Sequence record: NC_042116.1
Length of the DNA stretch: 64,000 bases
Strand: one strand, 5' to 3'
Positions within the stretch are counted from its first letter, which is position 1. Each line of letters begins with the position of its first letter. Below, one piece after another: positions 1 through 64,000 of this stretch. A program made the position numbers and the translations under genes. The notes beneath the pieces are model-generated. The model did not search any database. It had not been told where the DNA came from and worked only from the letters and a program-made list of their open reading frames with translations.

Positions 1-74
1 AATCAGTGCCTTCTCTTTTGACAAATGGATTTGTAAATTTTATTACAGTAAACAACAACAAAGGTAGAAGACGT

Positions 75-1406
75 ATGAGCGAAAACATTAAAACTGATAG
101 TCTAAATTATAACTTAAAACCATCTCAAGTTTTTGAAGCAATGCAAGTTGCAGATATAGTTGGTGATAGTTTAATGATTTGGGGTTCTCCTGGTATTGGT
201 AAATCTGCAATTGCCCGTCAATATGCGAAAGAAATGTATCCATTGTATAAAGACAACGTTGGTCAGTTAGAATTTTTGCTACAACGTGCACAAAATGAAG
301 ATGATACGTTAGTTACTATGAATGATTATTTGGATTTTAAAAATTCATTACTAGATCAAGAAACCAATTTTATTGATTTTCGTTTATCACAGATTGAGCC
401 ATCGGATCTTCGTGGTATTCCAATTCCAGTAAAAATGTATTATGATTTAGCAGGAAATCAGATTCTAGAATCTGAATTAGATAAACATCCAATTTATCAA
501 ACTGATACTTCAGTTGTATGGGCTGCTCCAGATATTCTTAAATTGAATCCTAGCTGGAAAGGTGTAATCTTATTTGATGAAATTAACTCTGCAATGCCAA
601 TTGTTCAAGCTGCTTCATATCAGTTAATTTTAGACCGTTGTGTCGGAGAACTAATACTTCCATCAACTGCATTGATTCTTGCAGCAGGAAACCGTGAAAC
701 TGATGGTGGTGTAACATTTAGTTTAGCAACTCCATTGCGTGACCGAATGACTCACGTAGAAATGATTCCAGACTATATGGATTGGATTGAAAATTATGCA
801 ATTCCTAATCGGCTAAATGCTGGTACTATTGCTTATATTAAAGAAACTGGTTCTAAAAACTTTAATACATTAAGCCCTAAAGATACTAGTCATTCTGGCG
901 GTTCTTCACCACGTTCATGGACTCGTGTATCAGAAATCGAAACAGTACGTAAACAATTAGGTACTTCTTCTCAAGTTTACAAAGCATTAATTGCTGGTCG
1001 AGTTGGTAATATAGCTGCAATTGATTATGTAACTTATATTGAAAATATGGCAGGTCTTCCAGATGTAATGGATATTATGAATGGATTAGTAACTGATTTT
1101 AGTGAACATGTTGAAGAAATATCAAAAAATTATTTCATTGTATTAAATTTAGTATATAAAATTATTGAATTTTTCAGTAAAAAAGTTGAAGGTTCTATTA
1201 CATTAGAACAATGGCGTTCTTATTGTACAAATTTCTTAACGTTTATCGATACTAATTTTGCTTCAACACAAACTGAATTAATTGTTCATGCAGTTCGAAC
1301 TTTCACTGACGCAAATGTTAATATTTCATATGCAGAAGTTCCAGTGTTTAAATCGTTTGTTACCAAATATGGTCCATTACTACGTAAGTGCCGAACAATA
1401 AAATAA
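75..1406 (+). CDS. MoxR-like AAA+ ATPase
   Basis: Walker A GSPGIGKS, DLRGIP, Walker B ILFDEIN, LRDRMTH; adjacent to a VWA gene. Start moved to MSENIK (ATG 75, AAGGTAG upstream). Confidence 0.85.
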   Translation: MSENIKTDSLNYNLKPSQVFEAMQVADIVGDSLMIWGSPGIGKSAIARQYAKEMYPLYKDNVGQLEFLLQRAQNEDDTLVTMNDYLDFKNSLLDQETNFIDFRLSQIEPSDLRGIPIPVKMYYDLAGNQILESELDKHPIYQTDTSVVWAAPDILKLNPSWKGVILFDEINSAMPIVQAASYQLILDRCVGELILPSTALILAAGNRETDGGVTFSLATPLRDRMTHVEMIPDYMDWIENYAIPNRLNAGTIAYIKETGSKNFNTLSPKDTSHSGGSSPRSWTRVSEIETVRKQLGTSSQVYKALIAGRVGNIAAIDYVTYIENMAGLPDVMDIMNGLVTDFSEHVEEISKNYFIVLNLVYKIIEFFSKKVEGSITLEQWRSYCTNFLTFIDTNFASTQTELIVHAVRTFTDANVNISYAEVPVFKSFVTKYGPLLRKCRTIK

Positions 1407-1413
1407 TTATAAT

Positions 1414-1436
1414 AAGGGACATTTTATATGTCCCTT
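1414..1436 (+). terminator. Hairpin between the AAA and VWA genes
   Basis: AAGGGACAT/ATGTCCCTT 9-bp stem with a short T tail. Confidence 0.5.
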
Positions 1437-1455
1437 TAATTGTATGAGAGGTTAT

Positions 1456-2772
1456 ATGAATACACCATATGTTGTATCAAAAGAATATGCTGATGAATGT
1501 CATGATAGAATTATAGTTGCTCGAACTTCAATGATAATGGGATGTCCATTTTTTGGAATACTTGCAGCTAGATTAAAATTAGTACCAAATAATACATGGT
1601 GCCGTACTTTAGCGGTTGATGGAAAACATTTATATTATAATGTTGAATTTATCATGGGTATTGAAGATCCATTACGCCGACAAGAATATGAAGATAAACT
1701 TAAAACTACAATTGATGATTTAACTACCGAACAAATTAAAGATGCATTGGATGGATTGAGTCATCAGAATTTAGTTGCAGCTATATGTCATGAAATTCTT
1801 CATTGTGCATATAATCATTTTTTACGCCGTGGATCTCGTAATCCAAAAAAATGGAATAAAGCTGCTGATTATGCAATTAATCAAATTATCAATCGCGATA
1901 AGAAAATGGGATTAATTAAAAAATCATGGCTATATAATTCTGATTATGAAGGTAAAGCTGCGGAAGAAATTTATAATATTTTAGAAGAACTAGGTGATAG
2001 TGATGGTGGCGGTGGTGGCACATTAGACCAACACGATATTCCACAACAGGACTCTAATGATAATGAAGATGAATCTGTTCCAAAATTTACTAAAGATGAA
2101 TTAGAATCATTTATGGATTCTTTTAAAGATGCAATGTTAAGTGCAGCTTTAGCCGATGGTGCACCTAAAGAAATTCGAGATATGATTGAAGAGTTTAAAA
2201 CTCCAACAATTGATTGGCGTTCAAAATTAAACAGAACTATCAGATCTTTGATTAAAAATGACGTATCATATATGATGCCAAGTCGTAGATCATGGAGCAC
2301 CGGATTTGGGAGTACTGGATCATATTATGGTTCTCCTATATATCCAGGATTAAAACCAGATTTAGATATTGATATATGCGTAGCATTAGATGCATCTGGT
2401 AGTATCAGTACTGAAATGTTAAAAGACTTCTTATCTGAAGTTATTGGGATGACTAAACAATTTAGTCAATTCAAAATTAGAATTCTTACTTTTGATACTT
2501 CTGTTTATACTGTACGAGATTATGTAACTGGAGAAGAAAAGAAGATTCTAGAATATCCAGTTGTCGGCGGTGGCGGCACGTTGTTTACTGCGGTATATGA
2601 TTATATGAAAAATGATAATTATTGTCCTAAGCAATTAGTTATGTTTACTGATGGTGAACCGTGGGGTTCTTGGGGAGATAGTAATTATTGTGAAACCTTA
2701 TTTGTAATTCATTCTAATCCAAAAAAAGAAGCCCCTTTCGGCACTACTGTGCATTATAATATTGGTGAATAA
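1456..2772 (+). CDS. DUF2201-type metallopeptidase-VWA protein (MoxR partner)
   Basis: HEILH zinc motif; C-terminal VWA MIDAS DASGS...GGGT...FTDG. Start 1456 follows GAGAGG. Confidence 0.85.
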   Translation: MNTPYVVSKEYADECHDRIIVARTSMIMGCPFFGILAARLKLVPNNTWCRTLAVDGKHLYYNVEFIMGIEDPLRRQEYEDKLKTTIDDLTTEQIKDALDGLSHQNLVAAICHEILHCAYNHFLRRGSRNPKKWNKAADYAINQIINRDKKMGLIKKSWLYNSDYEGKAAEEIYNILEELGDSDGGGGGTLDQHDIPQQDSNDNEDESVPKFTKDELESFMDSFKDAMLSAALADGAPKEIRDMIEEFKTPTIDWRSKLNRTIRSLIKNDVSYMMPSRRSWSTGFGSTGSYYGSPIYPGLKPDLDIDICVALDASGSISTEMLKDFLSEVIGMTKQFSQFKIRILTFDTSVYTVRDYVTGEEKKILEYPVVGGGGTLFTAVYDYMKNDNYCPKQLVMFTDGEPWGSWGDSNYCETLFVIHSNPKKEAPFGTTVHYNIGE

Positions 2773-2785
2773 CTATAATAAATAA

Positions 2786-2808
2786 AAGGTCACCATTATG
2801 GTGGCCTT
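2786..2808 (+). terminator. Intrinsic terminator
   Basis: AAGGTCACCA-TTA-TGGTGGCCTT followed by ATTCTTTT. Confidence 0.65.
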
Positions 2809-2815
2809 ATTCTTT

Positions 2816-2844
2816 TGGAACAGGCCATAATTTTATGGTATAAT
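2816..2844 (+). promoter_or_regulatory. Hybrid promoter A (TGGAAC-N17-TATAAT, extended TG)
   Basis: TGGAAC 2816-2821, TGG-TATAAT 2836-2844; same geometry at four other sites. Confidence 0.8.
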
Positions 2845-2878
2845 ATATATAATTAAAAAATACATGGAGTGTATAATT

Positions 2879-3109
2879 ATGAGTAATGAAGTTGAATTTA
2901 ACAGTGATGTTGTTGGCCCACAATTAGAATTCATTGATATTATCAATGCTACAAAAATCATGGAAGCCGCGATTGAACGTAAGGCATTTTCAATTAAAGA
3001 ATTAGGAGAAGTTGCCCCTATTGTAGCACGTTTCCAAGATTTTTCACAAGCAATTCTTGAAGAACAATCTAATTCTCCTGAGATTAAATCAGAAGGAGTT
3101 GCAGAATGA
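2879..3109 (+). CDS. Hypothetical small acidic protein
   Basis: ORF after promoter A; GGAG 2866-2869 favours ATG 2879. Confidence 0.65.
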   Translation: MSNEVEFNSDVVGPQLEFIDIINATKIMEAAIERKAFSIKELGEVAPIVARFQDFSQAILEEQSNSPEIKSEGVAE

Positions 3110-3753
3110 GTATTATTAGACATTGTGGAGTAGTTCGCAGTACTGGATCTCGTGTGTTTGTTGTTTGGCGTCAACTTGAGAATGATTCACGCCATTGTTT
3201 AGTGATTTATCGTGATTCATTACCAGAAGCTTATGTAACTAAAGTATCTGATTTAGTACTTAATCAAGGACAAAGCTCAATTGAACTTTGGGATGTTATT
3301 GATAAAATTGGTACACTTGAAGGTGCTAATATGTTAACCGTTTTACATAAAATGGGTTATATTCGTAAGCAAAGTACTTTAGATATTGATATGCATGTTG
3401 GTGGTAATAATAAAATTCCTTTGAATATTTTAAATGATGAAATTAATTCTGCACCAGAAATGGTTGCTGGAACTGTAAAAGATTTCAATCCATTTAAATC
3501 TCAAAATGTTCAATATCCAGAACAAAATACAGTAGTAACTCATCTATTAGATGATGCAAATAAGTATCAGCAATTAGCTAATGAAAGCTTTGAGCGTGCT
3601 TATAATTTAGATCCAAGTTTACGTCCTCAATCAGTTACTGGTGAAAATAAAGATGATGATTTAATTCATCTAAACATCGATCCTTCAATGTCACAAGCTA
3701 AAGCAATTGAGTTAGTTAAAAAGGCATTAAAGGAACATAAAGATGCAAAATAA
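3106..3753 (+). CDS. Hypothetical phage protein
   Basis: 215-aa ORF with ATGA overlap to the previous stop, in a co-oriented operon. Confidence 0.75.
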   Translation: MSIIRHCGVVRSTGSRVFVVWRQLENDSRHCLVIYRDSLPEAYVTKVSDLVLNQGQSSIELWDVIDKIGTLEGANMLTVLHKMGYIRKQSTLDIDMHVGGNNKIPLNILNDEINSAPEMVAGTVKDFNPFKSQNVQYPEQNTVVTHLLDDANKYQQLANESFERAYNLDPSLRPQSVTGENKDDDLIHLNIDPSMSQAKAIELVKKALKEHKDAK

Positions 3754-4051
3754 AATCACTAGGGAACAAATAATCAATTTGATTATTGAGGAACGCTTAA
3801 AACAAATGAGCAATCCAAATACCTTAGCTGACCATCTTAAAACCAAGAATGATTGGACAGGTTTAGCTGGATATTACTTATTTGAAAGTGCATCTAGACC
3901 TGATAAACATGTTTCTTTTGATGAATTTAGACTATCATTAATTAAAGCAGCAGCAGTAATACTTGCTGCTTTAGAAACAAGTTTTTCATTAGATGACAAT
4001 GATATTAAAGAATTATTATCCAAATTGGAAGATAAAAATGACACTAACTGA
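3743..4051 (+). CDS. Possible MazG-like all-alpha NTP pyrophosphatase-fold protein
   Basis: EERLKQ...NDW...LIKAAAVILAALE resembles phage MazG-like helical proteins; the acidic EExxE motif is not clear. Confidence 0.4.
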   Translation: MQNKITREQIINLIIEERLKQMSNPNTLADHLKTKNDWTGLAGYYLFESASRPDKHVSFDEFRLSLIKAAAVILAALETSFSLDDNDIKELLSKLEDKNDTN

Positions 4052-4625
4052 TATATCAACTATGTTGGATCAGTTCGAAAATGTATGTTTTAGTGGCGGT
4101 GCAGCAGGAGCTGACCGCCTTTTTGGTTTGTGGGCAGCATCAAATGGACATGAAGAAGTCCATTTTTCATTTAAAGGTCATAAATCACATGTACCACCTG
4201 AAACTGTTTTGGAATTACCAATAGATCTATTAACTAGTACGGAAATTGTACAAAAATTAAAAACAGCTAATAAAACACTAGAAAGAAGTGTACCTAAATT
4301 TGGGTACGTATATTATTTGTTAGCTAGAAATAGTATGCAAATTTATAGTTCTGAACGGTTGTATACAATGGGAATACTAGTTTCTCCCTCACAATTGGAT
4401 GGTGGAACTGCATGGGCTGTTCAAATGTACTTAGATCAAGAATCCGAGAATAAAGAAATATATCATTATGATATAGTTGATAAAAAGATATATTCATATG
4501 ATAATATACTAAAACAATTCATAGAAGTGCAATCTGTACCTAAACCACATGGTAAGTGGACAGGTATTGGATCTCGTAAAGCGACCGAAGATGATATGAT
4601 TTCATTTTCTTCTAAATTTGAGTGA
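4038..4625 (+). CDS. SLOG-superfamily (YspA-like) nucleotide-binding protein
   Basis: N-terminal CFSGGAAGAD, later DGGTAWAV and TGIGSR. Start moved to ATG 4038. Confidence 0.6.
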   Translation: MTLTDISTMLDQFENVCFSGGAAGADRLFGLWAASNGHEEVHFSFKGHKSHVPPETVLELPIDLLTSTEIVQKLKTANKTLERSVPKFGYVYYLLARNSMQIYSSERLYTMGILVSPSQLDGGTAWAVQMYLDQESENKEIYHYDIVDKKIYSYDNILKQFIEVQSVPKPHGKWTGIGSRKATEDDMISFSSKFE

Positions 4626-4969
4626 AAACTATGACTGAATTTGAATGTGAAGAGTTTAGACGTGAAATTTACAATGATGGTTATCAAGATGGTTTGGAAT
4701 GGGGCATTGAACGTGGAAATATTGATGGATACCAAAAAGGTTCTGAAGACACACGTAACGAATTGGAATCCGAACATGAAAACCAACTTGAAAAAGAATA
4801 CAAACATGGATTCAATGATGCAGAATCTACGTATTCAAGAGATATAGAAAATATACAATATAATATGGAACAAACTATACATTCGTTAAATTCTAAAATA
4901 TTAGATCTGAAACGAACTATATACAATCTAAGGAAAGAAAATGCAGCAATTACTAGATCTATACAATAA
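4622..4969 (+). CDS. Hypothetical protein with GxxxG (FliH-like) repeats and coiled coil
   Basis: YNDGYQDGLEWGIERGNIDGYQKG; GTGA overlap with the previous gene. Confidence 0.6.
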   Translation: MKTMTEFECEEFRREIYNDGYQDGLEWGIERGNIDGYQKGSEDTRNELESEHENQLEKEYKHGFNDAESTYSRDIENIQYNMEQTIHSLNSKILDLKRTIYNLRKENAAITRSIQ

Positions 4970-5879
4970 AGTTCTTGAATTTGGCGAACTTAGTACTGAT
5001 AGAACCGGTGTTGGTACAATAAAATTAATTTGTCAAACAATGAGATTTAATCTACAAGACGGTTTCCCTGCACCAACAACAAAACGATTAGCATGGAATG
5101 CAATGCTATCAGAGTTGATTTGGTTTATTGAAGGTTCACATGACGAACGTAGATTGTGTGAAATTTTATACGAAACTCGTGATGAATCTAAAAAAACTAT
5201 TTGGACTGCAAACTATCTAAATCAAGGGGTTTCATTGGGATATACTGACGGTGAACTTGGTCCAGTTTATGGTAAACAATGGCGGGAATGGATTGATATT
5301 CAATGTGAACAAAATATTTATGGTCATGATCCTTTAACTTATTTAAATTCTGGTTATGAGCAGATAGGTTATGATGATAAAAGTGATTATTACTTTTATA
5401 AAAGAACTATTGACCAGCTTTCAGTACTTATTGATGGATTAAAGAATGAACCGGATAGTCGTAGACATATTTTAACTTCATGGAACGTAGGTGAATTAGA
5501 TAAGATGTCATTAGCCCCATGTCATGCCTTTTCTCAATTTTTTGTAATAGATGGAAAGCTATCTTGTTCACTATATCAACGTAGTGCTGATTTATTTTTG
5601 GGAGTCCCATTTAATATTGCATCGTATTCTTTGTTAACACATATGTTAGCACAAGTTTGTGGATTAGATGTTGGTGAATTTATTTGGATGGGTGGTGATG
5701 TTCATATCTATCAAAACCACATCGACCAAGTAAAAGAGCAATTACAACGTACCCCACGCGAATTACCTACACTATGGATGGATACCAGTATTACTAATAT
5801 TGAAGATTTTAAAATGGATTCGGTTAGATTGGAAGGATATAATCCAGATGGTGTAATTAAAGCACCTATGGCAGTATGA
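4941..5879 (+). CDS. thyA: Thymidylate synthase
   Basis: DRTGVGT, LGPVYGKQWR, LAPCH catalytic Cys, YQRSADLFLGVPFNIASY, GDVHIYQNH. Confidence 0.97.
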   Translation: MQQLLDLYNKVLEFGELSTDRTGVGTIKLICQTMRFNLQDGFPAPTTKRLAWNAMLSELIWFIEGSHDERRLCEILYETRDESKKTIWTANYLNQGVSLGYTDGELGPVYGKQWREWIDIQCEQNIYGHDPLTYLNSGYEQIGYDDKSDYYFYKRTIDQLSVLIDGLKNEPDSRRHILTSWNVGELDKMSLAPCHAFSQFFVIDGKLSCSLYQRSADLFLGVPFNIASYSLLTHMLAQVCGLDVGEFIWMGGDVHIYQNHIDQVKEQLQRTPRELPTLWMDTSITNIEDFKMDSVRLEGYNPDGVIKAPMAV

Positions 5880-5884
5880 TAATG

Positions 5885-5911
5885 AAAAAGGAGCCATTGG
5901 CTCCTTTTTTT
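5885..5911. terminator. Bidirectional terminator at a convergent junction
   Basis: AAAAAGGAGCC-ATT-GGCTCCTTTTTTT. Confidence 0.8.
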
Positions 5912-7910: not shown

Positions 7911-7941
7911 TAAAATGTCCTCAGATAATGGTTATATTAAC

Positions 7942-7949
7942 TATTTATT
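7942..7949 (-). promoter_or_regulatory. T4-late-like promoter AATAAATA
   Basis: 32 nt upstream of the 7910 start. Confidence 0.6.
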
Positions 7950-7967
7950 CAGTACTTTCAAAAACAA

Positions 7968-7990
7968 AAGGCCAACAAAAAGTTGGCCTT
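7968..7990 (-). terminator. Intrinsic terminator
   Basis: AAGGCCAAC/GTTGGCCTT stem downstream of the 8006 stop. Confidence 0.7.
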
Positions 7991-8005
7991 ATTTTTATTA
8001 ATAAA

Positions 8006-8644: not shown

Positions 8645-8655
8645 TTTATCTCCTA

Positions 8656-13426: not shown

Positions 13427-13433
13427 ATTTTAT

Positions 13434-19069: not shown

Positions 19070-19111
19070 AAAAATTAAAGAGCATTAAGTACTTAATGCT
19101 CTTTAATTTTT
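19070..19111. repeat. Perfect 42-bp palindrome, probable bidirectional terminator
   Basis: AAAAATTAAAGAGCATTAAGT|ACTTAATGCTCTTTAATTTTT with no spacer, between convergent stops. Confidence 0.9.
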
Positions 19112-50255: not shown

Positions 50256-50261
50256 AAGATA

Positions 50262-50934: not shown

Positions 50935-51741
50935 ATGAATATTAATTTAATGAATGGTAATTGTATTGATCTAATGAAGAATATTCCTGATAATTCAATA
51001 AATTTAGTTCTTACAGATCCTCCTTATGGAACAACTGCCTGTTCATGGGATATTGTAATTCCATTTGAAGATATGTGGAATGAATTGAATAGAATAATAG
51101 CACCATGCGGTTCTATTTGCTTATTTGGTTCAGAACCATTTAGTTCTTTATTGCGAGTAAGTAATATGAATGCATTTAAATATGATTGGATATGGTCTAA
51201 AAATAAAGGAACTGGTCATTTAAATGCTAAAAAAATGCCTATGAAATATCATGAAATTGTTTCAGTATTCTCTAATACTCCAATAACATACTATCCTCAA
51301 ATGACTGAAGGGCATAATCCTATGAATTATGCAAAAAATAAGCAAAATAATATAAATTCAAGTCATGGAAGTGTTGTAAATAATGCAGGAAGTACCTTAC
51401 GAAATCCAAGATCTATACTTGAATATAAAACCGTCAATAATGATGGAAGTACCGATGGTGGTAGATTTCACCCATCACAGAAACCAGTATCATTATTGGA
51501 ATATTTTATAGAAACTTATACTAAAGAAAATGATACAGTATTAGATTTTACAATGGGTAGTGGTAGTACTGGAATTGCAAGTGTAAACTTGGGAAGAAAT
51601 TTTATTGGTATTGAAATGGACGAAAATTATTTTAAAATAGCAACTGACCGCATTAATAATGCAATAGATATTAAAAGTAGTAATACTGTGGATTGTGATG
51701 ACAAAAAATCAACTGATGAACCTGATTTTTTTGAATGGTAA
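50935..51741 (+). CDS. Beta-class DNA amino-methyltransferase (probably N6-adenine)
   Basis: Motif IV DPPY precedes motif I LDFTMGSGSTG; HPSQKPVSLLEYFI. Confidence 0.9.
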   Translation: MNINLMNGNCIDLMKNIPDNSINLVLTDPPYGTTACSWDIVIPFEDMWNELNRIIAPCGSICLFGSEPFSSLLRVSNMNAFKYDWIWSKNKGTGHLNAKKMPMKYHEIVSVFSNTPITYYPQMTEGHNPMNYAKNKQNNINSSHGSVVNNAGSTLRNPRSILEYKTVNNDGSTDGGRFHPSQKPVSLLEYFIETYTKENDTVLDFTMGSGSTGIASVNLGRNFIGIEMDENYFKIATDRINNAIDIKSSNTVDCDDKKSTDEPDFFEW

Positions 51742-51767
51742 AAAAAGCCGCTAAAAGCGGCTTTTTT
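51741..51767. terminator. Bidirectional terminator
   Basis: AAAAAAGCCGC-TAAAA-GCGGCTTTTTT. Confidence 0.85.
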
Positions 51768-51771
51768 GTTA

Positions 51772-52823: not shown

Positions 52824-52887
52824 ACTGACTCCATAATAAATACGTCTATACTATATTTTGTATAGAGTTATTTATGAGGGAAAATAC

Positions 52888-55035: not shown

Positions 55036-55052
55036 ATGGAGTTATATAAAAA

Positions 55053-56786: not shown

Positions 56787-56841
56787 GGTTCATAAATAAT
56801 GTTGATTCGTTCAATGAACGATTGAATAATAAGGATAGGTT

Positions 56842-57075
56842 ATGTTAGATGAAATTTTTGAAGCTAAAGATGACTCTATGTACGACCCTGAAGATGATCA
56901 GACAGTATATAAGTTGACTGACACTCGGAAACCTAAATTGACATTACAAATTCTCAATAACTTAAGAAAGTATAGAGAATTTAAAAAGAATGAGGCTGCT
57001 AAGCGTGATGCAATTGTTGCTATAGTATATGCACAATCTTCTGGTGATGATCAAGCTGGTGGTGGAATGATGTAA
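56842..57075 (+). CDS. Small head-module protein
   Basis: DTRKPKLTLQILNNLRK; between portal and core genes; late-like CATAAATA at 56791-56798. Confidence 0.65.
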   Translation: MLDEIFEAKDDSMYDPEDDQTVYKLTDTRKPKLTLQILNNLRKYREFKKNEAAKRDAIVAIVYAQSSGDDQAGGGMM

Positions 57076-57183
57076 TTATTAATGAAAAGTACTGTTTTTA
57101 AGCTTTTTTGAAAATGGTATTTTTATTAATAATAAATAATGACATACCAAAATAAAATTTTGTATATCTGTTTGGAGGATATA

Positions 57184-58023
57184 ATGGCAAATATGAAACT
57201 ATTGCAAGAAGCTATCCAAGCTTTTGCTAATGGCAACAACGAAATCGCTGATAAAAAAATGCGTAAATATTTCGTTGAGCAAGCTCAAGAAATTAATAAG
57301 AAACTAGAAGAAGAAATGGAAGAAGAAGTATGTGAAGATATTAATTCTGATCCAGAAGAAGATATGACTGATGAAATTGGTTATAAGCTTAATGAAGGTG
57401 GTTTCGAATTTGATGATGGTCGTGGTTCAGATGGTTGGGAACCAGAAGATGATCATTCAATGAATGAAGAAGAAGAAGAAGATTTTGATATTGAATCTGA
57501 CGATGGCGATGTAGAAGTTTCTGCTTCTAGTACTGCACCTGATGCTGATCAATGGGAAACAATTAAAACTGCATTCGAAGATTTAGAACGTATGTTTGAT
57601 GAAATCGAAGGTGGTTCAGTTGATTTTGAAGATGATGAATCTAATGATTTCGGTAATGAAGAAGAAGAAGTTGAAGATGAATTCAGTGATGTTCAGTTCG
57701 GTGATGAACAAGTTGGTGAAGCTTTCCAAATGAAGAAAGTATCTGAACCAGAAAAAACTGAAAAAGCAGGAGTTAATAAGAAGTCTGTAGTTGCTCCTAA
57801 TGCTAAATCTCCAGTTGATGGTGTTAAACCAGTAACTATTAAAGACGGTACTGTTGATGCAACTGATGATAAGTTTGAAAACTCTGATGCTATGACAGTT
57901 AAAGTAGAAGATAACAATAATGTTATGGATAACGGTAAACACGTTATGAAACCTGCTAAAACTCCAAAAAATACTGCTGAGAAATCACGTTCACCATTAC
58001 CAAAAAGTCAACCAAAATTATAA
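57184..58023 (+). CDS. Acidic prohead core protein
   Basis: Very Glu/Asp-rich. Start MANMK after GGAGG; late-like AATAAATA at 57131-57138. Confidence 0.6.
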   Translation: MANMKLLQEAIQAFANGNNEIADKKMRKYFVEQAQEINKKLEEEMEEEVCEDINSDPEEDMTDEIGYKLNEGGFEFDDGRGSDGWEPEDDHSMNEEEEEDFDIESDDGDVEVSASSTAPDADQWETIKTAFEDLERMFDEIEGGSVDFEDDESNDFGNEEEEVEDEFSDVQFGDEQVGEAFQMKKVSEPEKTEKAGVNKKSVVAPNAKSPVDGVKPVTIKDGTVDATDDKFENSDAMTVKVEDNNNVMDNGKHVMKPAKTPKNTAEKSRSPLPKSQPKL

Positions 58024-58045
58024 TAATATATGAAGGAGATCATTT

Positions 58046-58675
58046 ATGAGTATGCTTAGGGAATGGTCTTCATTCAATGATTCTAAAATAATACTAGAGT
58101 ATAAAGAGGATCAACTAACTGGACGTAAGAATTGCTATCTTAAAGGGATAGCAATTCAAGCTGATCGTAGAAACTTAAACGAACGAGTTTATCCTTTTGC
58201 TGAGATTGCTAGAGCAGTTAATAATATGGCAGAAAGAATTTCTAAAGGTGAAAGCATTTTATGTGAATGTGATCATCCAGAAACATTGACCGTAAACTTA
58301 GATAGAGTTGTTGGTATGATTACTAGTGTATGGATGGAAGGTGCTAATGGTATGGCTACTATTATGCTTCTTGATACAACATTAGGAAAAGATATCAGAA
58401 CTATGATTGAAAGTGGTGTTAAGTTAGGTGTTAGCTCTCGCGGTTCAGGTAATGTTGACCACAATGGTGTGGTATCTGAATTTGAAATAGTAACAATTGA
58501 TATTGTAGCACAACCAAGTGCTCCAGATGCATATCCACAAGCGGTATTTGAATCTCTCAATAATAAGTACGGTGCACCTATGACTGGCACAAACCGTGTG
58601 TTTGAGTCATCTAATAGTTCTTATAATAAAGTTGATGATGAAATTCACCAATTTTTTAAGAATTTAAAAGGTTAA
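58046..58675 (+). CDS. gp21: Prohead protease (T4 gp21-like)
   Basis: RNLNERVYP, ECDHP, GVSSRGSG, DIVAQPSAPDAYP. Confidence 0.92.
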   Translation: MSMLREWSSFNDSKIILEYKEDQLTGRKNCYLKGIAIQADRRNLNERVYPFAEIARAVNNMAERISKGESILCECDHPETLTVNLDRVVGMITSVWMEGANGMATIMLLDTTLGKDIRTMIESGVKLGVSSRGSGNVDHNGVVSEFEIVTIDIVAQPSAPDAYPQAVFESLNNKYGAPMTGTNRVFESSNSSYNKVDDEIHQFFKNLKG

Positions 58676-58686
58676 TAAAATAAAAT

Positions 58687-58694
58687 TATAAATA
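58687..58694 (+). promoter_or_regulatory. T4-late promoter TATAAATA (perfect)
   Basis: Upstream of the scaffold gene. Confidence 0.7.
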
Positions 58695-58744
58695 TCTGTA
58701 TATCAAGAGTGCAGATATTATCAGTACTTTAAAGGAGAAAACAA

Positions 58745-59869
58745 ATGTCAAAATTGGATAAGTTTCTAAACGAATCATCTCTTTCTGACGAAGCTAAAAA
58801 GCTAATTCAGGAAGCATGGAATGAAGAAAAAGCTAATGTAGCTGCTGAAATGCGTGAAGAAATGAAAAGTCGTTACCAAGAAGACTTAGCACGTTTAACT
58901 GAAGGATTAGACAAAATGATGGCTGAAGTAATCAGCGAACAAATGTCTGATGTATATGCTGAAAAGCGTAAGTTAGTTGAAGACCGTGTTAAACTTCGTA
59001 AAACATTGGGTAATTTTTCAGATTTCGCAAACACAGTACTAGCTGAAGAAGTTAAATCAATGCGTCAAGAACGCACACATCTAAATGAAAGTCTTAATAA
59101 ATTCATGGGATTCAGTAATCATATCCTAGCAGAAGAACTTAAAGATTTCCATGAAGAAAAACGTCAACTAGTTGAATCTCGTGTAAAACTAATTGCAGAA
59201 GGAAGTAAGCAAATTGCGGAAGCACGTGCAAACTTCATTAAACGTACTGCTGAAAGTGCAGCAACATATATTGCTGAAACTACAGAACGAAATTTAACTG
59301 TACTTAAGGGTGAACTAGTCGAAGCTAAACAAAATATGTTTGGTCGTAAAATTTTTGAAGCTTTTGCTAATGAATTCTACAGTAAGCAATATAACGAAAG
59401 TTCTATTCTACGTGAATTAAATGAATCAATCAAGTCAAAAGAAAATGAAGTTATGGTTTCAAATGTTGCTTTAAAAGAAGCAAAAGATAAAGCAGATGCT
59501 GCTGAACGTAAAGTTCGAATCATGGAAGATAAACATGCACGAATTGCAATCATCGCTGAATTAACAAAACCACTTACTGCTCAACAAAAACAAATTATGG
59601 AATCATTACTTTCAGTAACTCCAACCGAGAAACTAAAAGAAGATTTCACTAAGTACCATAAGTCTGTACTTAAAGGTACTGTAAATGAATCTGCTGCAAA
59701 TCATAGCCGTCCAGCAGTTAATACTAAGGCTAAAAATACTTTGACGGAAAGTAAAATTGTTACTGGAAACCGTGAAAGTAATTTCATTAAAGACGCAGAA
59801 CTTGATGCTGAAGACTTGGATTTCTTAGATGAAATCTCACGTTATGCAGGAATTAAGAAAAAACGTTAA
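58745..59869 (+). CDS. gp22: Prohead scaffold (T4 gp22-like)
   Basis: Coiled-coil Glu/Lys/Ala-rich, between protease and capsid; FGRKIFEAF. Confidence 0.75.
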   Translation: MSKLDKFLNESSLSDEAKKLIQEAWNEEKANVAAEMREEMKSRYQEDLARLTEGLDKMMAEVISEQMSDVYAEKRKLVEDRVKLRKTLGNFSDFANTVLAEEVKSMRQERTHLNESLNKFMGFSNHILAEELKDFHEEKRQLVESRVKLIAEGSKQIAEARANFIKRTAESAATYIAETTERNLTVLKGELVEAKQNMFGRKIFEAFANEFYSKQYNESSILRELNESIKSKENEVMVSNVALKEAKDKADAAERKVRIMEDKHARIAIIAELTKPLTAQQKQIMESLLSVTPTEKLKEDFTKYHKSVLKGTVNESAANHSRPAVNTKAKNTLTESKIVTGNRESNFIKDAELDAEDLDFLDEISRYAGIKKKR

Positions 59870-59946
59870 TTATTAAATGCTAATTTTTCTGTAAGATAAA
59901 TAAAAGCATACAGAAAAGCAAAAAATATCTTTTTAAGGAGATTATA

Positions 59947-61122
59947 ATGTCACAACTATTAACTGAATCTAAATGGGCTGCTGTAAAGGATAAGCTTGTT
60001 GAAGGTCTAAATGGTAATCGTAAAACTGTAATGGAAGCAGTTCTAGATAACCAACGTAAAGTAATGTTACGTGAAAGTGCAACTGCTGGTGCAACATCTG
60101 CTGGTAACATTGCAACACTAAACAAAGTAATTCTTCCAATTATTCGTCGTGTTATGCCAACCGTTATTGCTAACGAAATCATTGGTGTTCAACCTATGAC
60201 TGGTCCAGTTGGACAAATTCATACACTACGTGTACAATATGCTGATAATGCTCCAGGTGTTATTGCTGGTGAAGAAGCTCTATCTCCATACAAGATTGCA
60301 AAATCTTATACTGGTGAGATTAATTCTGATAATACCGCACCACGTGCCGCTCCAACTTCTCAACTAGAAGGTGTAATGGGTCGTCGTGTTAACATCCGTA
60401 TTCTACGTGAAACCGTAGAAGCACAATCTCGTCGTCTATCTGCTCGTTGGACTGTTGAATCTGCACAAGATGCTCAAGCACAACACGGTATTGATGTAGA
60501 AGCTGAATTGATGGCTGCTATTGCACAAGAAATTACTACTGAAATTGACCAAGAACTATTAGCTCGTCTACGTGCACTTCCAGGTGCGGCTGCTGTTGTT
60601 TATGACCAATCTAAAGTAACTGGTGTTGCTACCTTCGTAGGTGACGAACATGCTGCTTTGGCAACTCTAATCAACCGTCAAGCAAACGAAGTTGCTCGTC
60701 GTACCAAACGTGGTGCAGCGAATTGGGCTGTTGTTTCACCAACTGCTCTAACCATTCTACAGTCTGCAACTACTTCTAGTTTTGCACGTACTACTGAAGG
60801 GACTTTCGAAGCTCCAACTAACGTTAAATTCGTTGGTGTATTGAACTCAACTATGCGTGTATATGTAGATACCTATGCTGATGACAGTACTGATGTACTA
60901 ATCGGTTATAAAGGTAACCAAGAAACTGATGCTGGTGCATTCTATTGCCCATACATCCCATTGATGGCTTCTGGTACTGTAATGGACCCTAACACTGGTG
61001 AGCTAGTAACTAGCTTCTTAACTCGTTATGGTTATGTACAGTTAACAGATAGTACTTCATCTCTAGGTAACGCTGCTGACTACTACAGCAAAATTGCTAT
61101 CCGCAACGTAACCTTCATGTAA
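59947..61122 (+). CDS. gp23: Major capsid protein (T4 gp23-like)
   Basis: IGVQPMTGPVGQIHTLR, AQHGIDVEAEL, EITTEIDQE, FYCPYIPL, TRYG; late-like GATAAATA at 59895-59902. Confidence 0.96.
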   Translation: MSQLLTESKWAAVKDKLVEGLNGNRKTVMEAVLDNQRKVMLRESATAGATSAGNIATLNKVILPIIRRVMPTVIANEIIGVQPMTGPVGQIHTLRVQYADNAPGVIAGEEALSPYKIAKSYTGEINSDNTAPRAAPTSQLEGVMGRRVNIRILRETVEAQSRRLSARWTVESAQDAQAQHGIDVEAELMAAIAQEITTEIDQELLARLRALPGAAAVVYDQSKVTGVATFVGDEHAALATLINRQANEVARRTKRGAANWAVVSPTALTILQSATTSSFARTTEGTFEAPTNVKFVGVLNSTMRVYVDTYADDSTDVLIGYKGNQETDAGAFYCPYIPLMASGTVMDPNTGELVTSFLTRYGYVQLTDSTSSLGNAADYYSKIAIRNVTFM

Positions 61123-61166
61123 TTGAAGACCTATTTTAGATTAATTAATCTGAAAGTTAATAAAAG

Positions 61167-61190
61167 AAAAGGACGCTTAGGCGTCCTTTT
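61167..61190 (+). terminator. Terminator after the capsid gene
   Basis: AAAAGGACGC-TTAG-GCGTCCTTTT. Confidence 0.85.
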
Positions 61191-61229
61191 CGCATTTCTA
61201 ATATCTATAAAGTAAATATCAAAGTAGAA

Positions 61230-61258
61230 TGGAACGTTTTATATAATTATGGTATAAT
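61230..61258 (+). promoter_or_regulatory. Hybrid promoter E (TGGAAC-N17-TATAAT)
   Basis: TGGAAC 61230-61235, TGG-TATAAT 61250-61258. Confidence 0.8.
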
Positions 61259-61273
61259 CATGGAGATTAAAGT

Positions 61274-61705
61274 ATGATAATTAAACCAAATGCAACCGTT
61301 GTGGTTTATACTAACACACAACAAAAGTACTTACCAAGTGTTTATAGTAAATTTGAAGGATTAGTACAAGAATATAAGATTGTTGCTTATATAGAAGAAT
61401 TAGGAGTGCTATGTTATGGTAATGATACCTATTTTTATGATATGAATCGATATGTAAATGATATTATGAGCACTGATTTCATTGAAATGACTTATAACCA
61501 GTATATTATTGGTCATAATGAAAAACTAGTTCGTGAAAACCCTGATGCCCCTATGTTGAATTCAATGCCACCTATGATGCAAGGTGTACAAATGAATGAA
61601 CACGGCACAAATGCACCTATTTTGCGTGAAATTATTCATAATAACAATCCAGTACTAACAAATTTAAGCAATCGAGGTGTAAAAGTGCAGATTTTGAAAG
61701 GATAA
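61274..61705 (+). CDS. Hypothetical protein
   Basis: 143-aa ORF with GGAG RBS directly after promoter E. Confidence 0.7.
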   Translation: MIIKPNATVVVYTNTQQKYLPSVYSKFEGLVQEYKIVAYIEELGVLCYGNDTYFYDMNRYVNDIMSTDFIEMTYNQYIIGHNEKLVRENPDAPMLNSMPPMMQGVQMNEHGTNAPILREIIHNNNPVLTNLSNRGVKVQILKG

Positions 61706-61732
61706 ATACCCCACTTAATAAAGGGGTGATGT

Positions 61733-62044
61733 ATGTCTAAACAAATTTGCTATGTAATAATTAATCCAGCATGGCCTGAATGGGTTAAAATCGGTTTTAC
61801 ATCTAAAGAAGAAATGAAAACACGATTAAGTACCTATCAAACCGGTTCTCCGTTTAGAGATTATGAAGTTTATCATGAAGTTTATTTTGATGATGCTAAA
61901 GCAGCCGAAAAAGAAGTTAATAAGCGTTTAAAACAAATGAACGCAACACAAGGTACTGGAAAAGAATGGTATAAAATGCCTAAATCAATCGCATCCAATA
62001 TGATTGATTCAGTACTAGATGATTTAGAAGAAGGTTCGCTATAA
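61733..62044 (+). CDS. T5orf172/MUG113-type GIY-YIG-family protein
   Basis: CYVIINPAWPEWVKIGFTS...RLSTYQTGSP...AEKEVNKRL; late-like GATAAATA at 61701-61708. Confidence 0.8.
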   Translation: MSKQICYVIINPAWPEWVKIGFTSKEEMKTRLSTYQTGSPFRDYEVYHEVYFDDAKAAEKEVNKRLKQMNATQGTGKEWYKMPKSIASNMIDSVLDDLEEGSL

Positions 62045-62046
62045 TA

Positions 62047-62054
62047 TATAAATA
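62047..62054 (+). promoter_or_regulatory. T4-late promoter TATAAATA (perfect)
   Basis: Upstream of the S74 fibre gene. Confidence 0.7.
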
Positions 62055-62088
62055 TCTCTATAATATATAAACTTGAGGACTGATTTAT

Positions 62089-63723
62089 ATGAGTATAAGA
62101 TTTAATCATGCCAGTAATACTGTTACTGGTACAGATGTAATAACTTTAGTTGTTGAAGGAGGTTCACCAAGTTCTCCACGACCACTTAGAATTAATTCAT
62201 CATCTGTGGTAATGCCAAATAAACAATTACCAGTTGGTGAATCTGGTGCTGTTGTTTTTGACATGAATTCAAAGACGTTAAAATATCATAATGGTATACA
62301 ATGGGTAGAACTTTTATCACAAGATGATATACTTGCACCTATACAGATATCATTAACTGATATTTACAACCAATTAGCTAACCGTGTAAGTACTGTAACT
62401 TATAGTACTAGTAATATACCAACTGCATCCGTAATTGGAACAAACTTAAATATTGTATTCCCAACTTCTGGTGGTGGCGGTAGCACCGCAATTCCTGGAT
62501 TGTTTACATCTTCACCTCCAGGAAGTATAATGCAATATTCATTAATTTCTGGACAAAGTGTTTCATCAATTCGTGAACAACTTAGTGGTGAATCTGGTGG
62601 TCAAGCTGGTCGTGACGGAAGTTCATCTTCACCTTTTGTAACAAAAACTGGTTGGTGTTTTGGTGATGGGTTGTATTGGACATGGAATGGTGAAGGTGGA
62701 TCTATAACAAAATTAGTTCCTAATTTAAACCAAAATGCATATCTTAAAGGAATTACAACAACTGGAATTACAAAAACTGATGCAACTATAGCAGGTTCTG
62801 GTAGTATAAGTTCAACTTCAATAACTGCACCACAACATTATCATGGGACTGGTATGATGTTGGGGTTATCTGGTCAAGTTGCTGATGATGCTATGTTCAT
62901 AAGTAATAGAGTATGGAATGATGGAATTCAATACCAAGGTGTTCAAATAACAGGTGATGTTCAAAGTAGAGTTGTAGGAAATGTAAATGGTTCGGATTCA
63001 AGAACAGCATTAAGTACCACATTGGCTATATATACAGGTTCTGACACAACATCCCATACACATACATTAACTAACAACGATGTTGCACATTTTAATGTTG
63101 CAATGGTATATAATATTGCTGAACCAAGTTTAGCACTTAATCAAACTGCTGGTGATGCTAGATATGTACTTAAAGCTGGTGATATAATGACAGGTTCATT
63201 AACTATTGCTAACTCTGCAACAATATCTACCAATGATACTAGTAATATATTATGGTTTAGAAACGCAGCAGGTCTAGAACGTGCGGCTATATATCATAAT
63301 TCAACAACTAATACACTTAGATTAAGAAGTAATGGTGGTAATGAAGTTACTATTAATCAGGTAGGAAATTTAACTGCACCTACCTTGACAGTAACTGGTG
63401 TTGCAGCAACAGGGCCATTAACCGTAACTGGTAGAATAGTAGCATCTGACGATATATGGGCGTTTTCTGATATTAGATTGAAAGAAAATATGATTCCAAT
63501 TGATAGTGCACTTGATAAATTGGAAAAAATTACTGGATATATTGGTAATATGATAGGTGAAGATACTAAACGTTCTATGGTAAGTGCACAAGAACTTCAA
63601 CAAGTATTACCTGAAGCGGTAAGTACTAAAGATGAGTATTTGACAGTTAACTATTCTGCTATTATACCTCTATTAATTCAAAGTATTAACGAATTAAGAG
63701 AAGAAGTAAGGAGTAAAAAATAA
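62089..63723 (+). CDS. Tail fibre with C-terminal intramolecular chaperone (peptidase S74)
   Basis: AFSDIRLKEN...ALDKL...SAQELQQVLPEAV...VNYSAIIPLLIQSINEL. Confidence 0.85.
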   Translation: MSIRFNHASNTVTGTDVITLVVEGGSPSSPRPLRINSSSVVMPNKQLPVGESGAVVFDMNSKTLKYHNGIQWVELLSQDDILAPIQISLTDIYNQLANRVSTVTYSTSNIPTASVIGTNLNIVFPTSGGGGSTAIPGLFTSSPPGSIMQYSLISGQSVSSIREQLSGESGGQAGRDGSSSSPFVTKTGWCFGDGLYWTWNGEGGSITKLVPNLNQNAYLKGITTTGITKTDATIAGSGSISSTSITAPQHYHGTGMMLGLSGQVADDAMFISNRVWNDGIQYQGVQITGDVQSRVVGNVNGSDSRTALSTTLAIYTGSDTTSHTHTLTNNDVAHFNVAMVYNIAEPSLALNQTAGDARYVLKAGDIMTGSLTIANSATISTNDTSNILWFRNAAGLERAAIYHNSTTNTLRLRSNGGNEVTINQVGNLTAPTLTVTGVAATGPLTVTGRIVASDDIWAFSDIRLKENMIPIDSALDKLEKITGYIGNMIGEDTKRSMVSAQELQQVLPEAVSTKDEYLTVNYSAIIPLLIQSINELREEVRSKK

Positions 63724-64000
63724 TGGCAATACCTTGTACTGGCACAATAAAAGCTTCTGATATAAATGTCGAGTTGGGACGTCCAACAAATGGTACATTT
63801 AAAATTGGAAGTCCAGATGAACGTGCATTAGCAGGTAAACCATCTGGTTTAATTAAATTTAGTGATTTTTATTGTAAATCTGCCGCAGATCCATTACCTT
63901 GGAATGCATTCTCTTTACAAACAATTGGTGGTCGCCCTATTAGTGGTGGTGTAGCACAATTATGGAACATTGATGGTAGTACTATTGGTATATGGGGTGG
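63723..64000 (+). CDS. Partial ORF, probable fibre tip/adhesin partner (runs off the window)
   Basis: TAATG overlap; MAIPCTGTIKASDINVELG...GLIKFSDFYCKS, a motif that often follows S74 fibres. Confidence 0.6.
   Translation, partial: MAIPCTGTIKASDINVELGRPTNGTFKIGSPDERALAGKPSGLIKFSDFYCKSAADPLPWNAFSLQTIGGRPISGGVAQLWNIDGSTIGIWG

Follow-up and report, generated by a model that had tools for sequence, protein, structure and literature searches.

The palindrome AGTACT is maintained by selection at the DNA level in Yersinia phage fHe-Yen9-04, whose 354-kb genome contains 1,008 copies (2.84 per kb), 8.3 times the mononucleotide expectation (8.33x). The enrichment is conserved across the clade of jumbo phages to which this phage belongs, with turnover of the individual sites, and an unrelated prophage lineage has converged on the same word, with a reversal in one of its members. 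We infer that something other than the DNA methyltransferase encoded in the analysed region reads AGTACT on phage DNA. Short palindromes are expected to disappear from phage genomes, and 22 of them are completely gone from fHe-Yen9-04, yet this phage carries AGTACT at eight times chance and pays for it with a measurable cost in its protein sequences. A literature search found no paper describing AGTACT enrichment.

The window, by which we mean the whole stretch of 64,000 nt that was analysed, contained 149 copies by exact counting against 21.9 expected from base composition, a 6.8-fold excess. The first-pass annotation had estimated an excess of about 5-fold throughout the window, which was borne out and found to be stronger, and its expectation of 3.4 copies per 10 kb was right. 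It had listed 18 copies in positions 1-10,000, all of them correctly placed, but had missed the one at 3255, so that the actual number is 19, and its figure of about 22 copies in 50,001-64,000 compares with an exact count of 23. Its statement that the copies occur in different frames, in genes of both strands and in intergenic DNA also held: the counts for frames 0/1/2 were 67/7/21 in the minus-strand genes and 30/4/16 in the plus-strand genes, and the 4 copies that were non-coding according to our own ORF calls (7951, 19088, 57088, and 58723) were exactly those that it had named as intergenic. The features of the word in the window are as follows.

1..64000, no strand: AGTACT-enriched phage DNA with 149 copies, 2.3 per kb, 145 of them in genes.
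1..2310, no strand: right-hand part of the largest AGTACT-free gap in the genome (genome 123572-126311).
7951..7956, no strand: intergenic AGTACT adjoining a GC-rich hairpin and T-run, flanked by two minus-strand genes (from the sequence context).
19070..19111, no strand: bidirectional intrinsic terminator between convergent genes, with a 19-bp stem and AGTACT at the apex (19088-19093).
57088..57093, no strand: intergenic AGTACT located 13 nt past the stop codon of the upstream plus-strand gene (from the sequence context).
58723..58728, no strand: intergenic AGTACT located 22 nt upstream of a start codon, directly 5' of an AAGGAG ribosome-binding site (from context).

The terminator at 19070..19111 had a minimum free energy of -20.4 kcal/mol (z = -7.8), and none of 200 shuffled sequences folded as well. 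The largest gap is situated in genes that are conserved in all four jumbo genomes and therefore reflects protein constraint rather than recent acquisition. Recent acquisition was also rejected as a source of the AGTACT deserts in general, since the deserts lie in core genes and the accessory genes are as rich as the core (2.7 to 3.1 copies per kb in lineage-specific genes versus 2.5 per kb in core genes).

AGTACT was the top hexamer of the fHe-Yen9-04 genome, and under a dinucleotide model its excess was 11.7x. The excess increased from 2.2x for GTAC to 4.0x for AGTAC and 8.3x for AGTACT, and sub-word frequencies therefore do not explain it. When synonymous codons were shuffled within genes, the coding sequences of the window were expected to contain 35.7 +/- 5.0 copies against the 145 observed (z = 21.9), and the corresponding values for the whole genome were 201 +/- 12 against 858 (z = 54). 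The outcome that the first-pass annotation had named as refuting, a loss of the excess under such codon and sub-word controls, thus did not occur. The genome copies were distributed as 451/105/301 over frames 0/1/2, with 151 in intergenic DNA. An explanation by composition or coding, in which codon usage, the content of Ser-Thr or Val-Leu, repeats or a side-effect of purging other palindromes creates the excess, can draw on the observation that AGT-ACT or GTA-CTN codon pairs make up 60% of the coding copies. Ser-Thr was the most over-represented dipeptide and was spelled AGT-ACT in 451 of 750 cases. Furthermore, a 4th-order Markov model, alone among the models, absorbed the excess (1.18x), although this model already contains AGTAC and GTACT. 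However, neither of the codon-shuffle controls reproduced the excess, the density was higher still in intergenic DNA (4.0 versus 2.7 per kb in coding DNA), a single tandem array contributed only 9 of the 1,008 copies, and the purged palindromes could have supplied just tens of copies each. We consider an artefact of this kind to be already refuted by these controls and give it practically no credence.

The preferred bases extend beyond the hexamer to T-N-H-AGTACT-D-N-A, with CAGTACTG as the best form. This form occurred 12 times in the window against 0.71 expected, a number that was reached in none of 100 shuffles, and it accounted for 26% of the AGTACT sites in jumbo phage G004 and for 5% to 13% in the other genomes. 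The intergenic copies had the same flank bias as the other copies (G at -1 in 8%, C at -1 in 29%, and T at -3 in 45%).

The four complete genomes of the jumbo clade contained AGTACT at 7.2-8.3x. In 7t3, G004, and GAP32 the excess was 7-8x, as in fHe-Yen9-04, and GCGC was totally absent; phages BF and CBB were likewise rich in AGTACT. The AGTACT-rich phages have purged all GCGC along with 22 other palindromic hexamers. In the relatives of fHe-Yen9-04, AGTACT sites were conserved 1.6-2x better than average hexamers, and the density stayed at 81 to 116 copies per 46 kb in seven relatives. The nearest outgroups, XacN1 (385 kb) and RB49 (164 kb), contained 0 copies versus 127 and 79 copies of the control word. 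Six host genomes contained only 0.07 to 0.12 copies per kb versus 2.84 per kb in the phage, that is, 25-40 times fewer, and the word was present in the host chromosomes at 0.33-0.55 of the control word. With about 1 copy per 350 bp in the phage and 1 per 8-14 kb in the host chromosomes, the word distinguishes phage from host DNA.

Searching viral contigs for three clustered copies of AGTACT mostly retrieved tandem Ser-Thr repeats, but it also brought up an unrelated family of Enterobacteriaceae prophages of about 34 kb. In this family AGTACT was enriched 7.99x versus 8.33x in fHe-Yen9-04 and GTACTG 8.6x versus 7.3x, and GCGC was absent from both. The member in Mangrovibacter is a sharply bounded island of 36% GC within a chromosome of 51% GC, and the density of AGTACT changes in a sharp step at the provirus borders. 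No replication or repressor genes were recognisable in the island. In one member, G370, the half-site AGTAC was kept at 2.8x while AGTACT was present at merely 1.6x, and only 1 of 22 orthologous sites was retained versus 19 of 51 between two rich members. A contrast of gene contents found no gene family that the rich members have and G370 lacks. The same level in unrelated prophages, the removal in one member and the absence from the nearest relatives of the jumbo phages point to strong, switchable selection on one DNA word.

The jumbo clade and the prophage family are not fully independent. In a cross-search with profile HMMs, a lysis cassette was the sole family common to all members of both lineages, and an orphan methyltransferase in the prophage G012 had 60% identity with GAP32_519, compared with only about 27-30% with g080 of fHe-Yen9-04. 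Given the shared cassette and the exchanged orphan methyltransferases, a gene for a protein that reads AGTACT could also have moved between the lineages.

We also considered a mutational origin, whereby a biased polymerase, template switching or mismatch repair makes AGTACT without any benefit for the phage. The placement of the sites is compatible with such a drive: the gaps between them are essentially Poisson-distributed (CV 0.94, variance/mean 1.13), which led us to reject a regular spacing, and the level is even across frames, spacers, and gene age classes. However, neighbours of AGTACT at one mismatch were not depleted (0.95-2.4x), on which grounds a VSR-like repair drive was rejected, no other palindromes were enriched, and the sites are conserved above background. 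Nor are replication and repair genes common to both lineages, the prophage island having none at all, and G370 reversed the trait with the same set of genes while related phages have exactly zero copies. A mutational drive is consequently very improbable in our judgement.

The first-pass annotation had proposed that AGTACT may be the target of the DPPY methyltransferase encoded in the window:

50935..51741, plus strand: g241 (MT2), a beta-class DNA methyltransferase of the N6-adenine type (268 amino acids, DPPY motif, PF01555).

The gene for MT2 itself contains just one AGTACT, and its nearest relatives of solved structure in the PDB (CcrM, M.RsrI, M.MboIIA, and DpnA) have other targets. Relatives with at least 99% identity were found only in records of fHe-Yen9-04, while five others had 60-80% identity. 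The PF01555 domain gave one match each in BF, CBB, and GAP32, located at the locus of a second methyltransferase, MT1 (SPPY motif, genome 86906-87763), and none in 7t3 and G004, indicating that MT2 is missing from all five. Since these five genomes are all enriched 7-8x, the lineage-specific MT2 is not the cause of the enrichment, and the proposal was not upheld. M.ScaI is an N4-cytosine enzyme; conservation of an SPPY-type N4-cytosine methyltransferase together with the trait, as in ScaI-type modification, was not seen either, MT1 being present in BF, CBB, and GAP32 and absent from 7t3 and G004.

More broadly, AGTACT could be a methylation target in the manner of HIP1, recognised by an orphan methyltransferase (the PF05869 protein g050 in the jumbo clade and NPPF enzymes in the proviruses), so that methylation turns the word into an epigenetic mark or timer by which, for example, parental and newly replicated DNA are told apart at early promoters. 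Consistent with this, g050 was the only methyltransferase found in all five relatives tested (46-88% identity), and orphan N6-adenine enzymes of two families were present in four AGTACT-rich proviruses and in neither of the AGTACT-poor ones. An AGTACT-rich genome must moreover be immune to AGTACT-specific restriction, evidently the driver of avoidance in XacN1 and RB49, and promoters that are sensitive to methylation are a known principle, as in Dam-regulated promoters. However, the phages with the closest homologues of g050 lack the excess (0/7.4, 0/10.5, and 6/8.2 copies observed/expected), and a search of the provirus fragments and of the entire Mangrovibacter genome revealed no PF05869 gene. 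RB49, which has no AGTACT, encodes the NPPF enzyme as well, and the AGTACT-rich prophage G099 has no methyltransferase-like ORF. For MT1, MT2, and g080 alike, there are several AGTACT-rich genomes that lack the gene. Protection would also leave the sites neutral rather than favoured, and a methylation-coupled repair drive is not indicated by the one-mismatch neighbours, which are undepleted. Because none of the five methyltransferase-like genes of fHe-Yen9-04 matches the distribution of the trait over both lineages, and AGTACT is lacking or avoided where their closest homologues occur, these genes were rejected as a common cause. We regard a methylation mark as improbable, and the selective agent is not a usual restriction-modification pair.

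Across four jumbo genomes, 31 early promoters of the sigma70 type were identified that contain two AGTACT sites, one of which abuts the -35 hexamer while the other fills the spacer directly upstream of the -10 element. The spacing between the sites is 20 or 21 bp in 29 of the 31 promoters, and the second site ends 1 nt before the -10 element in 25. A form with a single site was found 15 to 22 times on the plus strand versus 0 to 4 times on the minus strand per genome. As in a sigma70 early-promoter element, the geometry is fixed, oriented with the downstream genes and conserved across relatives. The pairs resemble the operators of phage repressors and Dam-sensitive promoters in that two helically phased copies occupy the -35 flank and the spacer; each genome has about 20 early promoters of this kind. 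Operators are, however, normally confined to few promoters, whereas the promoter role covers about 2-3% of the AGTACT copies and at least 97% lie elsewhere, mostly inside genes.

These pairs, whose spacing fits cooperative binding by a phage regulator, raise the prospect that an early or virion protein of the phage binds AGTACT genome-wide, shuts the early promoters and marks or protects the phage DNA. A phage DNA-binding or packaging protein had also been suggested by the first-pass annotation, as an alternative to the methyltransferase. Cooperative binding would also fit an array of nine sites phased at 20 bp (genome 353537-353702), although relatives do not share this array. On this view, the prophages would either encode an analogue too diverged to be recognised or live as hitch-hikers or satellites that have adapted to a jumbo-phage helper and that, in order to pass as phage DNA, need the same tag and must be free of GCGC. 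The island has exchanged genes with the jumbo phages, lacks recognisable replication and repressor genes, resembles the jumbo phages and not its own host in composition, and matches them quantitatively in both enriched and purged words. It has, however, no excess of the late-promoter word of the clade, TATAAATA (4 versus 4.2 expected), or of the middle-promoter words, and a satellite with promoter words of the helper type was therefore rejected. Pfam and PHROG scans found no DNA-binding domains in the immediate-early genes behind the dual-site promoters, and these genes are not conserved between genomes, for which reasons they were rejected as regulators. Even profile HMMs revealed nothing beyond the lysis cassette that all members have in common, and the purge of AGTACT in G370 was not accompanied by the loss of any gene of the family. 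The 'DNA condensation proteins' of Rak2-like phages were also rejected as readers, being virion proteins with RCC1 repeats and not sequence readers. On balance, a phage-encoded reader seems unlikely, if less so than the explanations above.

The reading that we tentatively prefer, without giving it an even chance, is that AGTACT is a selected word for recognition of phage versus host DNA and that its reader is a dimeric DNA-binding factor which these phages do not encode and which probably comes from the host. AGTACT would be recognised on double-stranded DNA and maintained by selection, and the reader would bind it as a symmetric dimer, as suggested by the palindromy and the symmetric flank preferences. 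Neither the phage nor the prophage genes would supply the factor, which would most likely be a product of the enterobacterial host, since no candidate reader gene is shared and the word is kept or purged without a change in gene content. In the jumbo clade the word would be wired into the early promoters as a phased pair on which the bound factor acts as at an operator, and binding would provide protection or self-marking in addition to early-promoter control.

That the reader is a protein, that the host encodes it and what its binding achieves are all deduced indirectly. The immediate-early scans, the HMM cross-search and the gene-content contrasts yielded no dedicated candidate and no reader gene common to both AGTACT-rich lineages. 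The host assignment derives from this missing shared gene, and a small, fast-evolving DNA-binding protein could escape detection by HMMs. No enterobacterial protein of such a specificity is known to us, and it is difficult to see why a repressor from the host should occupy the early promoters of the phage. Furthermore, the C/G flank preference differs in strength between the AGTACT-rich lineages, a difference that is not an obvious consequence of one conserved reader in the host.

It is conceivable, but doubtful enough to be put forward with reserve, that AGTACT is the tag of a sequence-based system for self/non-self discrimination whose reader is either encoded by the host or passed among phages. 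If the reader treats AGTACT-saturated DNA differently, phages of Enterobacterales would be driven to one of two stable states, with no AGTACT or with about 1 copy per 350 bp, and unrelated lineages would have converged on the saturated state and on the loss of GCGC. Naming the reader could reveal a new mode of phage DNA recognition, protection or regulation in enteric bacteria and would explain the design of the early promoters in Rak2/GAP32-like jumbo phages, and AGTACT would offer a simple signature for recognising such elements in genomes.

The first-pass description of AGTACT as a HIP-like iterated signal is a fair one, in that the word is a palindrome found genome-wide, independent of frame, selected and conserved across the clade. 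Like HIP1 (GCGATCGC) of cyanobacteria, it is a short iterated palindrome that occurs in all frames and spacers as a clade trait with turnover of sites and without an established function. The genome-wide excess after controls (8.3x, 11.7x under the dinucleotide model, and codon z = 54) and the frame-independent distribution, with non-coding copies that have the same flanks (451/105/301 and 151 intergenic), are both of the HIP1 type. HIP1, however, is found in cellular chromosomes and co-occurs with a cognate methyltransferase, whereas AGTACT is found in viruses, is rare in the host chromosome and all-or-none between related phages, and none of the five methyltransferase genes tracks it in both lineages.

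The enterobacterial nucleoid occlusion protein SlmA binds a palindrome as a dimer, and its site, for which we take the consensus to be GTGAGTACTCAC, has AGTACT at the centre; to our knowledge, it is the only enterobacterial protein site of which this is true. The SlmA site, however, has G at -1, which is the base most disfavoured in the phage (6-8%). No full SlmA sites were found, GT.AGTACT.AC occurred 4 times and the half-site GT.AGTACT 39 times versus 54 expected, so that SlmA sites were rejected. Avoidance of restriction sites, as of AGTACT systems of the ScaI/Eco255I type, likewise exerts strong selection on AGTACT in phages that infect these hosts, but with the opposite sign, as the word is here enriched eight-fold instead of depleted.

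Chi, DUS/USS, and KOPS, which are read by RecBCD, the uptake machinery, and FtsK, respectively, are similar to AGTACT in having hundreds to thousands of dispersed copies under weak selection per site that mark 'self' for a protein machine. The higher density in own DNA that is typical of Chi and DUS was also seen for AGTACT (2.84 per kb versus 0.07-0.12 in the six hosts), and as with USS, some copies are located within terminator hairpins. Those words differ from AGTACT in being asymmetric, biased in orientation and provided with known readers, whereas AGTACT is palindromic and marks phage versus host DNA. It was also noted that true Chi (GCTGGTGG) is separately enriched in the jumbo clade, by 10-20x, and not in the proviruses.

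Yersinia phage fHe-Yen9-04, a jumbo myovirus (genus Eneladusvirus) of the Rak2/GAP32-like type, has a genome of 354,378 bp with 31.6% GC; the window corresponds to its bases 124001-188000 and contains its tail, baseplate, and portal region. The palindrome AGTACT was found 149 times in the window versus 21.9 expected, which bears out the claim of the first-pass annotation that it is over-represented throughout this stretch. The whole genome contained 1,008 copies, whereas base composition predicts 121 and a dinucleotide model 86. AGTACT was by a wide margin the most over-represented hexamer of the phage, and the excess rose stepwise from 2.2-fold for GTAC to 4.0-fold for AGTAC and 8.3-fold for AGTACT. 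The sister words GGTACC and CGTACG were absent from the genome, and neighbors at one mismatch were not depleted. There was a weak flank preference, T-N-H-AGTACT-D-N-A, the extended form of which, CAGTACTG, was enriched 28-fold in the genome and occurred 12 times in the window (0.71 expected).

According to our own longest-ORF gene calls, which were used throughout, 451 of the genomic copies were located in frame 0 (AGT-ACT), 301 in frame 2, 105 in frame 1, and 151 in non-coding DNA, where the density was higher than in genes. Shuffling of synonymous codons within genes yielded 201 ± 12 copies in the genome versus 858 observed (z = 54), and 35.7 ± 5.0 versus 145 in the window alone, while permutation of whole codons yielded 118 in the genome. 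The enrichment persisted after codon shuffling, which had earlier been named as a possible refutation, and with this z-score the probability that it is a coding artefact is negligible. ST was the top over-represented dipeptide of the proteome (1.54-fold) and was encoded as AGT-ACT in 451 of 750 cases versus 118 expected. The flank preferences were identical in intergenic and coding copies, and the spacing along the genome was approximately random. Selective pressure therefore targets the DNA word itself, and its strength suffices to distort the encoded proteins.

The word was enriched 5.2- to 7.6-fold in the syntenic 46-kb regions of BF, pEa_SNUABM_12, CBB, GAP32, XbC2, Kaldavass, and Salmonella phage 7t3, and 7.2- to 8.3-fold in the complete genomes of 7t3, GAP32, and G004, a 345,809-bp IMG/VR record. 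GCGC was missing from these three genomes (218 to 358 expected) and from fHe-Yen9-04 (222 expected), in which 22 palindromic hexamers had no copies. Orthologous AGTACT sites were retained 1.6 to 2 times as often as average hexamers, and many turned over while the overall density remained constant. Lineage-specific and core genes were equally rich, and the few deserts were located in conserved core genes. The clade pattern is one of many interchangeable, weakly selected sites. It was also noted that G004 contained 247 copies of CAGTACTG (83-fold) and, unlike its relatives, which had none, tolerated GGTACC (49 copies, 1.9-fold).

For hosts and outgroups, TCATGA, which has the same composition as AGTACT, served as the control word. 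The 385-kb Xanthomonas phage XacN1, which on the basis of its portal is the closest outgroup to the jumbo clade, contained 0 AGTACT versus 127 control copies, and the 164-kb coliphage RB49, in which GCGC was at a normal level, contained 0 versus 79. Related phages thus either have the word in abundance or lack it altogether. In six host chromosomes, AGTACT occurred at 0.33 to 0.55 of the TCATGA frequency, or once per 8 to 14 kb; the two lowest values belonged to hosts of AGTACT-poor elements, a weak trend in few genomes.

Five methyltransferase-like genes (METHYLTRANSFERASES) were identified in fHe-Yen9-04:

g050, PF05869 'Dam' family
g080, gamma-class, NPPF
genome 73639-74382, NPPF enzyme
MT1, genome 86906-87763, PF01555, SPPY
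MT2 (g241), window 50935-51741, plus strand, PF01555, DPPY

MT2, the DPPY enzyme that the first-pass annotation had suggested as the writer of the signal, was confined to fHe-Yen9-04, whereas the trait is clade-wide, and it was rejected as the cause. MT1 was absent from 7t3 and G004, and g080 and the 73639-74382 enzyme were sporadic; RB49-like phages carry the latter yet have 0 AGTACT. The g050 gene was present throughout the jumbo clade, but the phages with its closest homologs showed no excess, and it was absent from a second, AGTACT-rich provirus lineage and the genome of that lineage's host. None of the five genes explains the trait; a methylation mark on the word is possible but unlikely.

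The 73639-74382 gamma-class enzyme gave only weak MTS/Methyltransf_25 matches in Pfam. Its identity was 48% to 49% among fHe-Yen9-04, GAP32, and a Mangrovibacter provirus (G013:C14:84108-84833), and the provirus copy was about 61% identical to those in RB49-like T4 phages; it appears to be an orphan enzyme that is mobile. MT2 is flanked by the gene for endonuclease VII on one side and a baseplate-hub gene on the other. The locus looks like a recurrent insertion slot, because BF, CBB, GAP32, and XbC2 have a stretch of about 800 bp without annotated genes in its place (window 50100-50935; L003 40154-40958).

A provirus family with the same signature was found among viral contigs and was present in 12 to 13 of 401 sampled Enterobacteriaceae species genomes. 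The island of about 34 kb encodes a serine recombinase and a terminase-to-tail-to-lysis module, with no recognizable replication or repressor genes. In Mangrovibacter plantisponsor it forms a sharply bounded block of 36% GC in a 51% GC chromosome, with about 12 AGTACT and 0 GCGC per 4 kb versus 0 to 2 and about 20 in the flanks. Pooled over five members, with counts based on elements of 20 to 40 kb, AGTACT was enriched 7.99-fold (8.33-fold in the phage), GTACTG 8.6-fold (7.3-fold), and AAGTAC 3.8-fold (4.1-fold); GCGC was absent and most other GC-containing palindromes were purged, as in the phage. The two lineages are unrelated in the sense of having no profile-HMM-level similarity outside the lysis cassette. 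When 39 provirus families and 461/466 jumbo-phage families were searched against each other with profile HMMs, the only proteins common to all members were a lysozyme and a small membrane protein encoded next to it, and no candidate reader gene was common to both lineages. Two orphan methyltransferases were sporadically shared, one of which, in the G012 provirus, was 60% identical to GAP32_519. The shared lysis genes and methyltransferases show that the lineages have met in the same cells. The Mangrovibacter island also encodes five paralogous membrane proteins of about 110 amino acids with a conserved N-terminal 'IWPPVIYY', at its left border and inside (G013:C14:50072-51452, 58684-59004).

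Most provirus members were AGTACT-rich and GCGC-free, and the two features were both present or both absent in all elements except G370. The G318 member had normal GCGC and depleted GTAC. The G370 member was GCGC-free and retained the half-site AGTAC at 2.8-fold, with AGTACT at only 1.6-fold because T followed AGTAC in just 16% of cases, versus 57% in the Mangrovibacter element. With DNA divergence matched at 70% in both pairs, G099 shared 19 of 51 AGTACT sites with G325 (37% versus 14% background) and 1 of 22 with G370 (5% versus 12%). The lost sites and the scarcity of T after AGTAC thus indicate that the palindrome was eliminated in G370. No gene family of the rich members was missing from G370, and judged from gene content the agent that sets keeping or purging is external to the element.

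The data require a sequence-specific agent on double-stranded DNA, and a mutational drive is very improbable; the palindromic form of the word and the symmetry of its flanks suggest that the agent is dimeric. We tentatively favor a protein reader that is encoded elsewhere than in the compared phage gene sets, most probably in the host; its binding would make saturation advantageous through protection or self-marking, and it may also serve as an operator-binding factor at early promoters. A phage-encoded reader that escaped detection, including a model of the island as a jumbo-phage hitch-hiker, is rather doubtful.

In the early-gene region, the density of AGTACT was doubled and the copies were paired. 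Across four genomes, 31 dual-site promoters of the form AAA-AGTAC-TTGCAT...AGTACT-N-TATAAT were identified, in which the last T of the first AGTACT doubles as a base of the -35 hexamer. The start-to-start distance was 20 bp in 20 cases and 21 bp in 9, and the second copy ended 1 nt upstream of the -10 hexamer in 25 of the 31. The single-site version occurred 15 to 22 times on the gene strand versus 0 to 4 on the other. The downstream genes, in which no DNA-binding domains were found, varied from genome to genome; the promoter module is conserved and the cargo is not. RpoD-like promoters were listed for CBB without mention of the word (PMC5259590).

Neither promoter version was found in the 64-kb window, and a pair 20 bp apart at 40600-40625 that fits the early-promoter pattern, amid a gene-dense structural region, is probably a chance match. 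The four non-coding copies in the window were next to or within terminators, or in front of a ribosome-binding site, and one of them formed the apex of a bidirectional terminator hairpin with a 19-bp stem. Outside the window, at genome 353537-353702, a tandem array of 8.3 copies of the 20-bp unit AGTACTATCAAGTATAATTG yields nine AGTACT in helical phase, within a non-coding stretch of about 1.9 kb across the record ends. The array was not conserved in 7t3 or GAP32, and G004 had an array of 2.4 copies only.

Other words also deviated. The E. coli Chi octamer GCTGGTGG was enriched 10- to 20-fold in four jumbo-clade genomes (13 to 24 copies on the plus strand and 3 to 8 on the minus strand, about 1 expected) and was not over-represented in the proviruses; either GCT-GGT-GG codon use produces it as a side effect, or it may be a real RecBCD-directed word. 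A 41-kb viral contig (G007, L134-L136; 96% complete, 46% GC) displayed a third type of signature, with all GTAC-containing hexamers enriched (GTAC 2.6-fold, GGTACC 3.7-fold, TGTACA 3-fold, AGTACT 4.2-fold, TACGTA 3.5-fold) and mild GCGC depletion. The T4-type late-promoter word TATAAATA was under-represented 3- to 6-fold genome-wide in fHe-Yen9-04 and three relatives. The remaining copies were mostly on the gene strand, with 13 of 21 plus-strand copies lying in the 80 nt that precede a start codon, a placement that fits a functional late promoter avoided elsewhere.
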